Positions 29,126-33,912 of a stretch of 64,000 nucleotides of DNA are shown here, piece by piece. Location: NCBI GenBank assembly GCA_965112735.1, contig OZ218956.1, forward strand, positions 3,720,001 through 3,784,000. Reading direction: 5' to 3'. Position 1 is the first letter of the stretch. Each line of letters starts with the position of its first letter. The notes beneath the pieces were generated by a model. That model was not told the DNA's origin. It searched no databases and worked only from the letters and a program-made list of their open reading frames with translations. A program made the translations under genes and the position numbers. The DNA is from Phaeosaccion multiseriatum. Lineage: Eukaryota; Protista; Ochrophyta, other classes.

Positions 29126-32100
29126 TCACGGCCCCAGGCCCAGCAGGGCGGCCAGAGCATCTTTGTGCTCCAACCAACTCTGCAGCACCAGCCACGCTAG
29201 AGCGATGAACGCCACTCTGCCGATGTTGAGCTCCGCGCCCCTGACGCCCATCTGCCGGGGCCCTGACGTGCCCCTCCCCCCCGCGGAAGGATGAGCACCA
29301 GCCCCTGCCCCCTCACTGACGGCGCTGAACAAGCTCCCCTCCTCTCTCCGCTGCCGAGCCCCGACCAAAGCCAAATACACGAGCTCAAGCAGCGTCGCCG
29401 ACAGCACCAGCTGGAACGCACCAGAGACGTTGACATGGGCCAACGCGTCTACCAGGCCCGTGGATACCGCCGCTGCGGGAGAGGCACTGGGCACGACGGG
29501 CAGCAAGGCCTCCACGTACGCCCCGGGGTCCTCCCCGAGGGGGGCAGACCCTCGGCTCGAACTCGCGCCTATCGCGAGCCCTACCACCTCCGCGGCCAGC
29601 CAGCAGAGCAGCCCCACCACGGCGAGGCGAGAGTGCTTCAGCTCCGTCTCTCGGTACCAGATGCGCTCGGACGCTGAAGCAGCGGCCGTTGCTGGTGCCG
29701 CTCCGCTGGCGTGCCTGGGGTCAGGACTGCTGCTCCTCATCCTGCTGCCACTGCGTGTGGTGCTGACAAGCGCTTCCATGTCTTCCTCCACTCCCTCGTC
29801 CTCTTGCCCTCGCTCCCCCTGCTGCTCCACCAGGTTCCAGGGCCACGCAGCTGCAACTGGCGACGCATGCACCCCCACTAGCTGCACGTGCACATTGCCC
29901 AATGAGTTCATACCCATCCTGCCGGCCTCCCCCTCGTCCTCCGCCTCCTCTGCCTCCCCCTCCTCCATCTCCACCACCTCCACCACCACGACCTCCTCCT
30001 CCTCGTCGTCGTCCATGAACATCAACATCTCCTCCTCCTCCACCTCCTCCTCCTCCTCCTCCTGCTGCTGCTGCTCCTCCTTCATCTGCAGCCGCTGCGG
30101 CTCGACGTGGGGCCTGAGCTTCTGCTGCTCCAGCACACCCATTGAGGGGGCTGCCGCTCCTACCGCGAAGGAGGCACTGTCCACGCCGTTACAAGCACCA
30201 TCACCGGTGCCGCCACTACCCACGTCCGTGTACGGCTGCGTGAGGATGCTCACCACGTCTCCGTTCTTTAGTGGGTGGTTGAGACCCACAATGCGGGAGT
30301 TGACCTTGGCGCTGGCCACGCGGCTGAGCACAGGCCGCCCCCGCCCACCCTTCCTCGCGGCCTCCTCCTGCAACATCTCCAACGCGGCGTCTTTGACCGT
30401 ACACGCGGACTGGGGAAGGTCGAGAATCACACCTGCGGAGGTGAACACAAAGCGCCGCCCTAGCACGGAGGCCTCCAGAGACTCGCGGATGGTGCGCGTG
30501 TAGGAGTAGTCTCTGTCTCTGTCTCTGGGCGGCAAGTGCCCAGTTGCTAGTTCCTTCCGCCGCTCCCCGTACTCCTCCTGTGGCCTCGCCCCCCCGCCCT
30601 CCCCCTGCTGCTGGTGCTGTTGGTGCTGCTGGTGCTGCTGGTGCTGTTGGTGGTCCGCGTCAACCTCCTTCTGCACGTCTCTCAGCCAGGGCAGCTCCGT
30701 GTACATGCCGCCGCCCCCTGCCCTCGCCCCTGCCCTCGCCCCCTCCCGCGCAGGCACTCCTCCGGCTGCGCCTCGCTCCACCCAGGACGGGGTGCGGGCC
30801 TGCCTGCCCGCTGCCGCCACCGTAGAGCCACTACCACTACCAGCTCCTGCTCCAACCCCCAAGTCGGGATCGCAGGCATTGGCCACCCCTGTGGACGAGA
30901 TGCGGTCCATCCTGCCCGTGCGTATCTGCACCTCCACCGGATGCCCATTGAGGGACACAGCAGTGTGTAGGCACGTGTATCCGTTGCTCTTGGGGAAGGA
31001 GATGTAGTCCTTCACCCGCGGGGGTGAAATTGGCTTAAGCAGCGCGTGAGCCTTCTCCATGATGCGGTAGCAAAGATCTCTCTCGGTCATGCTCTGCTTC
31101 AGACTGGCCAGGGCGGCTCCCCTGTCAAGGAGTTCTTGTGACTCCATCTCCTCTGAGCCTGCTGCCGCGAGTGTGCGCATGCCCATCGCTTGGTCGCCTT
31201 TCCCAGAGCTCCCCTCCCCCTCCCCCTCCCCCTCCTCCCCTTCGGAGGCGTCAGGCACATCAAAGACAACTCGAAAGGACACGACGTCGTACACTTCGAA
31301 GATTTTGTTTTGGTTCCTCTTCAGAGCGCGCCACACGCCGTACAGGGGTTTGATGTGCGTCTCCACCCGCAGACTCGTCACCCATTGTTGTTGTTGCTGC
31401 TGCTGCTGCTCCGCTAAGAAACCTGCTTCCTCTGCCCCCACCTCCCCTTCCCGCTCAAGTGCCTCTTCCTCAGGGCCGCCCTCCCCTTCCCCTCCCACGG
31501 CACCAGCAAGAGCAGCGGCAGTTGGGGACGGTGCACAGAACGCCGCACGCAACTCGCTCTGCACCCACGCCCTCGTATCCTCTAACACGGCCGAGTTGTG
31601 CTGAGTCATCTCCTCCCTCCTGCTGAGCAGCATGCGGGTGCGTGCGTGCTCCGCCGGGTGCAGCACCTCAAAGCACAGGTCCTCAAGCTCTGTCTTGATG
31701 TTCCACAGCCCGAGGCGGTGCGCGAGAGGCACGAACACGTCCATGGTCTCTCTGGCGATGCTCTGCTGCTTGGCCGGGGGCATTGCCCACAAGGTGCGCA
31801 TGTTGTGCATCCGGTCCGCCAGCTTGACCACCAGCACTCGCCAGTCCTGACTCATGGCGATGAGCATGTGCCGCAGATTCACCACCTGCTTGCTCTCGTC
31901 GGGCAGCGGAATGCGCGCTTTGATGCGTGCGCGGACCTCCTGCTCCGCCTCATCCAAGCCGTCCTGCCCGTTCACGTCCTCGAGACTGAGGTCTATGTCG
32001 CTGGCCGGGCCGTAGATGGCCTCGTCCTGGGCCAGTTTGCTGATCTTGCCAGGAATCTTGGACACTTTGGTCTCGCCCTCCACGATGCGACGCACGGTGG

Positions 32101-33482
32101 TGCCAAACTGAAGGGGAGAGGACACACACATGTACGGCAATCAATCAGCCCCAGGCCACAGGTGGGTGGAGTGGAGAGAGAAAAAAGGGGAAGCTCTACA
32201 GCTCTACGGCTTCGACAAGAGGGGCACTTTTCTCCGACCCCACATGCACGCACACACGCGCCAAGGTTGGCCACCACCACTGCCCCGCCAGTCACCACAC
32301 ACGTGCCCCCCCCCCTCCACGTCCTGGACTCCCCTTCAACCCATCCGCCCACCCCCCTCGCTCCACACACTCTCCAATACCCTGCACACCTGCCCATCCA
32401 CCTCTTCTCGTTAACACCACCCCCTCCTCATTGTAACGCACCTGCCCCTCCACGTCCTCAAACTGAAGCTTTGTGTCCTCGACCGTGTCATGCAGCAGCC
32501 CCGCCACAACGCAGTTACAGTCCATGCCCAGGTCCGCCAGGATGGCCCCCACCGCCACGGGGTGTACGATGAAACTCTCCCCAGAGCGGCGCTTCTGGCC
32601 GCTGTGGGCATGAAACGCCACCTGCAATGCGATGTCCACGCGGTACCTCTCTTCGGCCAGCATGTGCGCGACGTGCGGCTGCAGATACGCGGTGAGGTCT
32701 TCAAGCTCCTGCACGTCTGCGGGGGTCTTGCACCAGCCGAAGGTGGCCGCCAGCGTGGTGAAACCACGCCCCAAGTGTTCTCGCTGCTGCTCTGTGGTGA
32801 GCTCGCTGGGCTCCCACAAGCGTTTCATAGCGCTCACTTGCTCGGACGGTGGCGTTGTGAGCTGGTCCAGCCACTTGCGGATGCCCAGCCCGTCGCCCTC
32901 TTCCTTCTCCTTGCCCTTATTCCACTTCTGGGCGCTGCCCTTGTTATCCGGCCCACCTCCTCCCCCCCTCTTACCTCCACTCCACCCCAACAGCTCCCCA
33001 AACAAGTCGTGCGAAGCGTCTCCGGTACCGCTCACCATCTGCAGAGGCCCCCGCGCTCTCCGCAAGAGCGGTAAATACCTATTTGTAGCTCTTCGCAGCA
33101 TGGGCGACGGAAAATCATCGCTGGTTCTTCTGCCTCTGCTGATACCTTCTCTTGTGCTGCTGCTCCTGCACCCACCCGGCCCCAGAGAGAATGCCGTCGT
33201 CGACGTCGTGGCAGCACTGGCTAAGGAGAGGGCTGTGAGGCAGTAAGAGGACGCGCTCGCCCCTCTTCTCCTCTTGCGCATCACCCGCCCCGTGTGCGCC
33301 GGTTGACAGACCGGCGCAAAGCTCAACCTCGCCGCTCCTGCACGCGGCATCCCACTGCCACCGCTGCGCCTGCTACCACGACTCGCGCCCCAGGCCAATG
33401 TGACCCCCCCTTCATCTTCTCCCCCCCCTGCTGCCCCTGCTTGCCCTTCTGCTCCTCTCTTCGCCCTCGTCGGTGTACTCAT
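29126..33482 (-). CDS. RSH: RelA/SpoT homologue (HD hydrolase, degenerate synthetase, TGS) with a C-terminal light-harvesting-complex (chlorophyll-binding) domain; exons 33482 (or 33281)-32442 and 32107-29126
   Basis: HD: HSGQKRRSGESFIVHP..AGLLHDTVEDT, VKLADRMHNMRTL. Synthetase: YDVVSFRVV, KDYISFPKSNGYTCLHT, VEVQIRT. TGS: FVFT..ILDLP..TVKDAA..AKVNSRIV..LKNGDVVSIL. LHC: WYRETELKHSRLAVVG and AELNIGRVAFIA..LQ. Signal-like YCLTALSLASAATTSTTAF follows Met 33281. Confidence 0.92.
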
Positions 33483-33912
33483 TTGATGTTTAGTGCGCCA
33501 GATTTCGACGGGGCAAAACCTTTTCCACAGTTTAGCCGCACGGCCGCCGACCTGCCCACCCGCTTGTCTCTATCAGCCTCCGGTTAGGGGCTACAGCGTC
33601 TGCTGCATCCTTAGCAGCTGCTGCAGCAGCTTCGTTGCCTTTTACCCCCCCCCCCCTCTTTTCGTTTCCCTCCTTTCTCCTTTCCCGGCCCTCTTGTCTC
33701 TTTTCTTTCTCCTTTAATCCATCCTCCTTCAAGCTCAGATATGCCACTGCAGAAGTCCTACGTCTTCTCTTTCCGCACACTCTCTCTTCTCCTCCTCTTG
33801 TGCTTTCCTCCGCTGGGGTTGTTTATCCTCCTTTCTCTAAACATGGCTTTTTTTCACCAACGTGGTTTCGCACCACGTCCCGTGGATACACCCCCACCCC
33901 CCCCCTCTCCCG

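Follow-up and report, generated by a model that had tools for sequence, protein, structure and literature searches.

In plastids, guanosine tetraphosphate (ppGpp) restrains transcription, translation and photosynthetic capacity. The nearest described counterpart of the gene reported here is a RelA/SpoT homologue (RSH), RSH1 of Ectocarpus siliculosus (CBN78357.1), to which a 'Chlbp' domain (Pfam00504) was given in one sentence, for that one species and with no analysis of the domain (Avilan et al., 2019; PMC6881373). Our gene lies on the minus strand, at positions 29126-33482, of a stretch of 64,000 nucleotides (hereafter the window) from Phaeosaccion multiseriatum (assembly GCA_965112735.1, contig OZ218956.1, positions 3,720,001 to 3,784,000 of the forward strand), and it encodes an RSH that ends in a domain of the light-harvesting complex (LHC) family. 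We read it as a nuclear gene for a plastid-targeted, thylakoid-tethered hydrolase of the RSH1 type, acting on the pentaphosphate and tetraphosphate of guanosine, together (p)ppGpp; this reading is likely as far as anatomy, targeting and tethering are concerned, and we hold less firmly to its further part, that the enzyme is regulated through the LHC-family domain instead of through ACT.

In the same study, two RSH4 proteins of the CASH group are mentioned as having N-terminal EF-hands, and in a maximum-likelihood tree the Ectocarpus fusion protein is joined (97.1/1/94) by an RSH1 of Nannochloropsis gaditana (EWM29759.1) that has a decayed synthetase (EVHVNT) and no Chlbp listed (Avilan et al., 2019; PMC6881373 and its supplement); the C-terminus of EWM29759.1 may hold a divergent LHC domain missed by CDD. 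In the full-text literature on ppGpp or RSH together with chlorophyll a-b binding, light-harvesting or thylakoid anchoring, we found the fusion only in the paper of Avilan and co-authors and in its preprint, and a 2010 survey of Ectocarpus chlorophyll-binding proteins does not mention it. A first, sequence-only reading of this DNA, which had proposed an RSH joined to an LHC domain, knew of no described fusion of this kind; on that point it needs correction, as Ectocarpus RSH1 is listed with a Chlorophyll A-B binding domain (Avilan et al., 2019), and the window protein is a new, divergent member of an already recorded, unstudied fusion type. What appear to be undescribed in the searchable literature are the clade that these proteins form across several ochrophyte classes and uncultured marine eukaryotes, the loss of ACT, the invariant residues of the LHC motifs and the degenerate GR motif of the synthetase.

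The gene is made up of a pair of minus-strand open reading frames (ORFs), 33482-32292 (396 codons) and 32140-29126 (1,004 codons), which combine into two exons with a product of 1,340 aa, counted from the first ATG. Exon 1 (32442-33482; this and all features of the gene given below are on the minus strand) covers the presequence, a conserved N-terminal region (..LGRGFTTLAATFGWC..) and the first half of the HD domain; a phase 0 intron of 334 nt, predicted from the GT...AG borders (32108-32441; donor GTG, acceptor CAG), is followed by exon 2 (29126-32107), with the remainder of HD, the synthetase fold, the TGS domain, an acidic linker, the LHC-family domain and the stop codon (29128-29126). In Pfam scans the HD_4 profile is split, its first 60 positions matching the upstream ORF and the rest the downstream one; removal of the intron joins ...LQFEDVEGQ to FGTTVRRIVEGETKV... 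and makes the profile contiguous, and the spliced motif, EDVEGQ followed by FGTTVRRIVEGETKV, is common to all homologues. HD_4 (81.6 bits), RelA_SpoT (61.1), TGS (36.5) and Chloroa_b-bind, the last above its curated cut-off, are found by Pfam in one chain, as the sequence-only reading had expected. From the end of TGS to the stop codon the frame runs for 370 codons with zero stops, for which the composition-based chance is 3e-5; 0 of 20,000 shuffles stayed open over those codons, the other two frames of the same strand have 11 and 6 stops in this stretch, and the GC content at third codon positions of the coding frame is high throughout the linker and the LHC region. The proposal that HD, synthetase, TGS and an LHC-like domain share one stop-free frame is borne out by the open frame and the Pfam matches, and re-reading the coordinates put the three proposed helices, the TGS domain and the ..TTSTTAF presequence at the places first given for them.

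The window protein is longer than its homologues (1,340 aa versus 830-980 aa) because it contains several in-frame low-complexity inserts relative to them. Coding tracts of low complexity lie at 29923-30092, 30582-30655 and 31205-31246 and encode an acidic stretch of Glu and Asp, a repeat of His-Gln and a poly-Gln stretch. Two ORFs stand on the plus strand opposite the gene, at 29430-30503 (357 aa) and 31598-32572 (324 aa); such antisense ORFs are expected in coding DNA of 62-69% GC and are no evidence of genes.

The LHC-family domain (29129-29659), delimited by the Pfam match, by hydropathy and by profile search, has three predicted membrane helices and a short C-terminal one. Chloroa_b-bind (PF00504) scored 29.8 bits in the whole ORF and 35.2 bits when the last 224 aa were scanned alone, against a curated cut-off of 22.3. 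The strong hydropathy peaks of the protein (19-residue Kyte-Doolittle maxima of 2.36, 1.98 and 1.55) fall within the three proposed helices, in the last 180 aa; elsewhere the 1.2 cut-off is reached by windows of the HD and TGS domains, which are soluble, and of the loop between helices 1 and 2. Helix 1 (29659-29588) carries an ExxHxR motif that reads ELKHSR, helix 2 (29413-29375) a conserved Glu and helix 3 (29242-29180) an ExxIGR...Q motif that reads ELNIGR. In an alignment of eight fusion domains, and again in one of 21 sequences with canonical LHC units from polyproteins among them, helix 1 has an invariant E, H and R, helix 2 an invariant Glu, and helix 3 an invariant E, G and R. The helix-3 Gln stands 17 residues past the Glu and is present in 7 of the 8 fusion domains first aligned; this spacing is that of Glu180 and Gln197 in LHCII. 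Members of the clade differ at the position of the helix-3 Asn (I, R, V, S, N, Y). The alignments agree with the sequence-only reading that both E..R pairs, the helix-1 His, the helix-2 Glu and the helix-3 Gln are kept and that the Asn of helix 3 has given way to Ile.

A family profile matched solved fucoxanthin-chlorophyll protein (FCP) and LHC chains over nearly the full chain length, with E values of 1e-17 to 1e-11, and the best single-domain profile matches were acpPCI-3 (1e-16), FCPI-7 (7e-16), an Emiliania LHC and Nannochloropsis VCPI-1. FCPI-7 has been called orthologous to red-algal LHCR in a structural paper, and an Lhcr-like affinity of the domain can serve as a lead, the score margin being small and no subfamily being assigned. 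An origin from RedCAP was also considered and set aside, the best solved matches being Lhcr-type instead, though by a small margin. An exhaustive phmmer search with the LHC domain alone gave four matches, all of them LHC polyproteins and none a fusion protein; by sequence, this confirms kinship with LHC, the search being too insensitive for orthologues. Identity within the LHC domain is 85% between Ectocarpus and Nemacystus and 33-41% between classes, where the linker has 24-31% and the catalytic core 51-59%. Because its identity exceeds that of the linker, the domain is, by this comparison, under purifying selection, though changing more quickly than the enzyme part. Two AF2 models, built with 8 and 21 sequences, had a modest confidence (pLDDT) of 63-65 and gave three long helices, at domain residues 9-47, 91-128 and 147-176, and a short C-terminal one.

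The same residues bear on the possibility that the LHC-family domain is a membrane anchor only, without pigment and without signal, an explanation that deserves a place although we incline against it. LHC Glu-Arg pairs are also structural cross-links of helices 1 and 3, so that their conservation is no proof of pigment; in its favour, too, are the Ile at the ligand position of the helix-3 Asn, a position that is variable across the clade, and the faster evolution of the domain relative to the catalytic part seen in the between-class identities. However, the helix-1 His, helix-2 Glu and helix-3 Gln, which are chlorophyll ligands in solved LHCs and not cross-links, are all present, the His and the Glu invariant in 21 of 21 aligned sequences and the Gln in most members; moreover, one hydrophobic helix would suffice for anchoring, yet the full three-helix module has been kept across classes. 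Under the preferred reading, in which the domain has a regulatory part besides tethering, it may bind pigment; the thylakoid-anchored, possibly pigment-binding RSH proposed in the sequence-only reading is plausible, and the invariant LHC-motif residues fit it.

The first half of the HD domain, in exon 1, holds RRSGESFIVHP (32591-32550) and LLHDTVEDT (32498-32472), and the second half (31703-32107), which includes KLADRMHNMRTL (31825-31790), was placed by the Pfam HD_4 match at ORF residues 79-146 and by alignment to Thermus Rel. In an alignment with the homologues and with Thermus thermophilus Rel (PDB 6S2T), the hydrolase motifs R-SGE-HP, HDxxED and DRxHN are intact in every member of the clade; in the window protein RRSGESFIVHP, LLHDTVEDT and ADRMHNMRT line up with those of Thermus Rel. 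The RelA_SpoT synthetase-fold domain (30878-31384; Pfam 61.1 bits, aligned to 6S2T) is interrupted by low-complexity inserts, and its GRxK motif has become THIK (within 31372-31328). Throughout the fusion clade the Gly of GRxK is replaced in all aligned members and the Arg in all but one (P0025). The window protein keeps the YD..FR, KDYISFPKSNGY..LHT and EVQIRT motifs of the synthetase, and the brown-algal members show additional decay of synthetase motifs (NNY, QILT). In RSH1-type enzymes this Gly has served to mark loss of synthetase activity, and ATP binding has been ascribed to the Arg beside it (Avilan et al., 2019; PMC6881373). Because GRxK is degenerate while the hydrolase motifs are intact, we take the enzyme, on its motifs, to be hydrolase-competent and probably synthetase-poor. 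Where the sequence-only reading spoke of RSH enzymes that set ppGpp, an RSH1-type ppGpp hydrolase is likelier here than a general ppGpp-setting enzyme, GRxK being THIK and the hydrolase motifs intact.

These motifs also speak to the idea of a bifunctional synthetase-hydrolase like the diatom PtRSH1, in which light or the state of the antenna would decide, through the LHC domain, which activity prevails. We think this improbable. The window protein has kept most motifs of the synthetase; moreover, PtRSH4a and PtRSH4b synthesize without the Gly, and among red-lineage enzymes an RSH1 may have both activities (Avilan et al., 2019; PMC6881373). Here, however, both the Gly and the ATP-binding Arg are substituted (by T and H), and the further motif losses of the brown-algal orthologues imply that synthesis is not evidently conserved in the clade.

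The TGS domain (30230-30457; RRFVFTSAGV ... NGDVVSILTQPY; Pfam 36.5 bits) is followed by a linker of 190 aa (29660-30229), defined by composition, which has 36 Glu and whose DNA is of low complexity at 29923-30092. Within the linker a VHVQLVG..WPWNLV motif lies at 29893-29828, and WP[WL] precedes LHC helix 1 in 8 of 9 fusion proteins. No Pfam match to ACT was obtained in the window protein at E <= 1, and in precomputed Pfam lists PF13291 is in none of the fusion proteins, yet is present in ACT-bearing relatives. Since ACT is undetected in the fusion proteins and present in their relatives, the LHC domain, to judge by domain content, replaces the usual C-terminal regulatory module after TGS, which comprises helical, zinc-finger and ACT/RRM parts.

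At the other end of the protein, Met68 (33281) is the likely start codon, since with no other candidate does the N-terminus combine a basic n-region with a hydrophobic stretch. M1 and M45 were considered as starts and rejected by inspection, no hydrophobic signal core standing at the N-terminus with either. From Met68 the sequence MRKRRRG...ALSLASAATTSTTA/F (33189-33281; slash, predicted cleavage site) reads as the signal-peptide part of a bipartite plastid presequence; it ends ..TTSTTA/F, with Phe just after the cleavage site, and the homologues have equivalent motifs at the same place (ADA/FNF, ASS/FSP, AEG/FMA, ASA/FHT). The layout is what we take to be the ochrophyte pattern of signal peptide plus Phe, and import of the window protein into the plastid by means of the bipartite presequence is probable.

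With the 1,004-aa ORF as query, the best homologues combine PF04607, PF13328, PF02824 and PF00504 in one protein. The architecture of the window protein recurs in Chrysoparadoxa australica (P0001), Scytosiphon promiscuus (P0002), Phaeothamnion confervicola (P0004), Ectocarpus sp. (P0006) and Nemacystus decipiens (P0007), in an MMETSP transcript labelled 'complete' whose cluster includes Vaucheria litorea (P0003), and in P0025 and P0027, a 1,477-aa ENA protein and a second MMETSP transcript. On its Tara Oceans metagenome scaffold, P0025 forms one ORF. With a profile built from the fusion LHC domains, the domain was also found at the C-terminus of P0080 (E 1e-15), which is one uninterrupted ORF filling a 2.7-kb Logan contig, and the same profile picked up the start of LHC helix 1 exactly where a partial Discosporangium protein (P0005) is cut off. 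The search for the same architecture in other algae that the sequence-only reading had proposed thus returned about ten relatives, several of them from transcriptomes. A helix-1 motif, (W/L)(Y/A)RExE(L/V)(K/Q)H(G/A/S)R, is common to all fusion proteins, and the linker motif VHVQ..WP(W/L) to most of them.

In trees made from top hits only and rooted at the midpoint, the LHC-bearing RSHs form a 100/100 clade when the catalytic columns alone are used, apart from the ACT-bearing RSH1 of red-algal type and from Deinococcus-Thermus Rel, and the tree of all columns gave the same grouping; the best bacterial matches were Thermus, Meiothermus and Marinithermus. By sequence, the window protein is the orthologue of Ectocarpus RSH1 with its Chlorophyll A-B binding domain, and the Ectocarpus protein was classed as RSH1 by Avilan and co-authors (Avilan et al., 2019; PMC6881373). 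Because the homologues, several of which come from transcriptomes, share the architecture and form one clade, an artefact in the window is very unlikely to be the source of the fusion.

The brown-algal part of the clade also contains about 17 Logan and ENA proteins (P0008-P0024) of 580-765 aa with HD and RelA_SpoT only; probably their calls were cut short on genomic contigs that contain introns, and they are not paralogues without LHC. A word-indexed search of long proteins with the LHC region of the window gave no match, this region being too divergent or of too low complexity for a word index, and the same kind of search with the Vaucheria LHC region returned only the query itself. Because these index searches brought in no other protein, the spread of the fusion was read from matches to the RSH part. 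In a protein atlas the search met generic RSH clusters only, at scores of 0.82 or less.

Four public sequencing runs contain the sequence of the locus, and in all of them the intron and its flanks are covered at even depth, such that they behave as genomic DNA. Every contig built from the short reads of these runs breaks at 29923-30092, in the linker between TGS and the LHC domain, and at 30582-30655 and 31205-31246. Because the reads are DNA-like and the contigs break in low-complexity tracts, the runs neither confirm nor refute the splicing or the linker join. That a separate RSH and a small LHC-like protein were run together locally by a missed intron, a missed polyadenylation site or a mis-join in the linker is scarcely credible, for although contigs from the same sample break at 29923-30092 and the low-complexity linker has the unusual length of 190 aa, the frame is open for 370 codons (chance 3e-5), a conserved VHVQLV..WPWNLV stands between TGS and LHC as it does in the homologues, read depth is even over the region, and about ten homologues of the same architecture come from independent genomes, transcriptomes and one metagenome.

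Contigs in three of the runs join 33661 back to 32409 through 17 other letters, at full depth, and loose ends occur likewise at 33644-33661 and 32409-32427. The join probably reflects either a short pyrimidine-rich or G-rich motif that recurs at another locus or a path in the assembly graph; it may also represent a local rearrangement or duplication.

LHC proteins insert into the membrane with the N-terminus on the stromal side. As a thylakoid-tethered hydrolase, the window protein would, after import, insert its LHC domain into the thylakoid membrane in this usual orientation, and the catalytic part, comprising HD, the synthetase fold and TGS, would then be stromal at the membrane surface, where ppGpp acts. 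There the enzyme would work mainly as a (p)ppGpp hydrolase, synthesis being carried out by other RSH enzymes, and the LHC domain would be tether and regulatory input together. The likeliest input would be folding or stability that depends on pigment, or docking among proteins of the antenna and the photosystems; removal of ppGpp would thereby follow the chlorophyll and antenna state of the thylakoid.

A stronger version, compatible with the evidence but one that we would not expect to be correct, is that the LHC domain is a chlorophyll-dependent switch, folded and stable only when loaded with pigment or docked among Lhcr-type antenna at a photosystem. If so, the supply of chlorophyll and antenna would be signalled directly to plastid gene expression by the amount or activity of the tethered hydrolase, and a whole ochrophyte branch would have a direct link from pigment status to the stringent response in place of the amino-acid-sensing ACT.

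Several points weigh against the preferred reading of a tethered hydrolase with a regulatory LHC domain. The Asn ligand is absent from helix 3. A missing Gly is by itself no proof of a dead synthetase, given that PtRSH4a and PtRSH4b are active despite missing it (Avilan et al., 2019; PMC6881373), and the other synthetase motifs (D, KDYI..PK.NGY..LHT, EVQIRT) are present. The four runs, being DNA, give no transcript support in the source organism, and their contigs, which break in the linker, provide no bridge from TGS to LHC in the source genome that is independent of the assembly. In the structural comparison that had been suggested for the domain, all top matches of the models were indeed LHC chains, but the scores were weak (Foldseek E >= 0.075, TM 0.2-0.4; VIA Z <= 8.9 for the LHC matches, under the tool's own bar for helical folds) and the pLDDT was 63-65; the fold evidence is consistent with LHC and is not independent proof. 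Finally, we infer membrane insertion, orientation, pigment binding and enzyme activity alike from sequence.

The tethered-hydrolase reading places a predicted ppGpp-degrading enzyme and a module of a chlorophyll-binding family on one polypeptide, and it suggests a concrete way, open to experiment, in which the status of antenna or pigment could reach stringent signalling. Brown algae, Xanthophyceae, Chrysoparadoxa, Phaeothamnion and uncultured marine eukaryotes all have this arrangement; several of these lineages grow in culture, and some ochrophytes can be transformed by existing methods.

Set beside the known systems, the window protein is closest to Ectocarpus RSH1, in which the domains follow one another in the same order (presequence, HD, synthetase fold, TGS, LHC-family domain), which belongs to the same clade (P0006 being its counterpart from Ectocarpus sp.) and which shares the invariant LHC-motif residues and the WPW/WPL motif of the linker. 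The two are about 34% identical over their whole length, with 59% for the catalytic part and 34% for the LHC domain; low-complexity inserts make the window protein much longer, more of its synthetase motifs survive, and its helix 3 has ELNIGR where Ectocarpus has ELHNGR. Arabidopsis RSH1 and the diatom PtRSH1 are long, plastid-targeted RSHs with an affinity to Deinococcus-Thermus Rel, as the window protein probably is, and they likewise have an intact HD domain and TGS; in Arabidopsis RSH1 the synthetase Gly is substituted as it is here; PtRSH1, in contrast, is bifunctional with an intact synthetase, whereas the window protein has THIK for GRxK. Moreover, RSH1 of plants and of the red lineage is soluble and has ACT after TGS, where the window protein has a membrane domain of the LHC family instead. 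CRSH/RSH4 with EF-hands is also a plastid RSH in which the C-terminal regulatory module became a sensor domain, but that sensor is soluble and binds Ca2+, and the enzyme, a member of another clade, is a synthetase whose hydrolase is degraded.

On the antenna side, the domain resembles LHC/FCP proteins, in particular the Lhcr-type FCPI-7, acpPCI-3 and VCPI-1 of solved photosystem I supercomplexes, which it matches as a profile over the full length (E 1e-17 to 1e-15) and with which it shares three hydrophobic helices, the ExxHxR of helix 1, the Glu of helix 2 and the ExxxGR and Gln of helix 3. It differs from them in ending an enzyme of 1,100 aa instead of being free-standing, in being without the helix-3 Asn and in its longer loops, and its Pfam score is low, about 30-35 bits where canonical LHC polyproteins reach 240-880; it probably does not serve as a light-harvesting antenna. 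Precedents are ferrochelatase II, with its C-terminal CAB/LHC motif in plants and cyanobacteria, and LIL3, an anchor for enzymes of the chlorophyll pathway, in which elements of the LHC family tether or regulate enzymes at the stromal face and can bind chlorophyll; those proteins have a single LHC helix and serve tetrapyrrole metabolism, whereas the window protein has three helices and belongs to nucleotide signalling.

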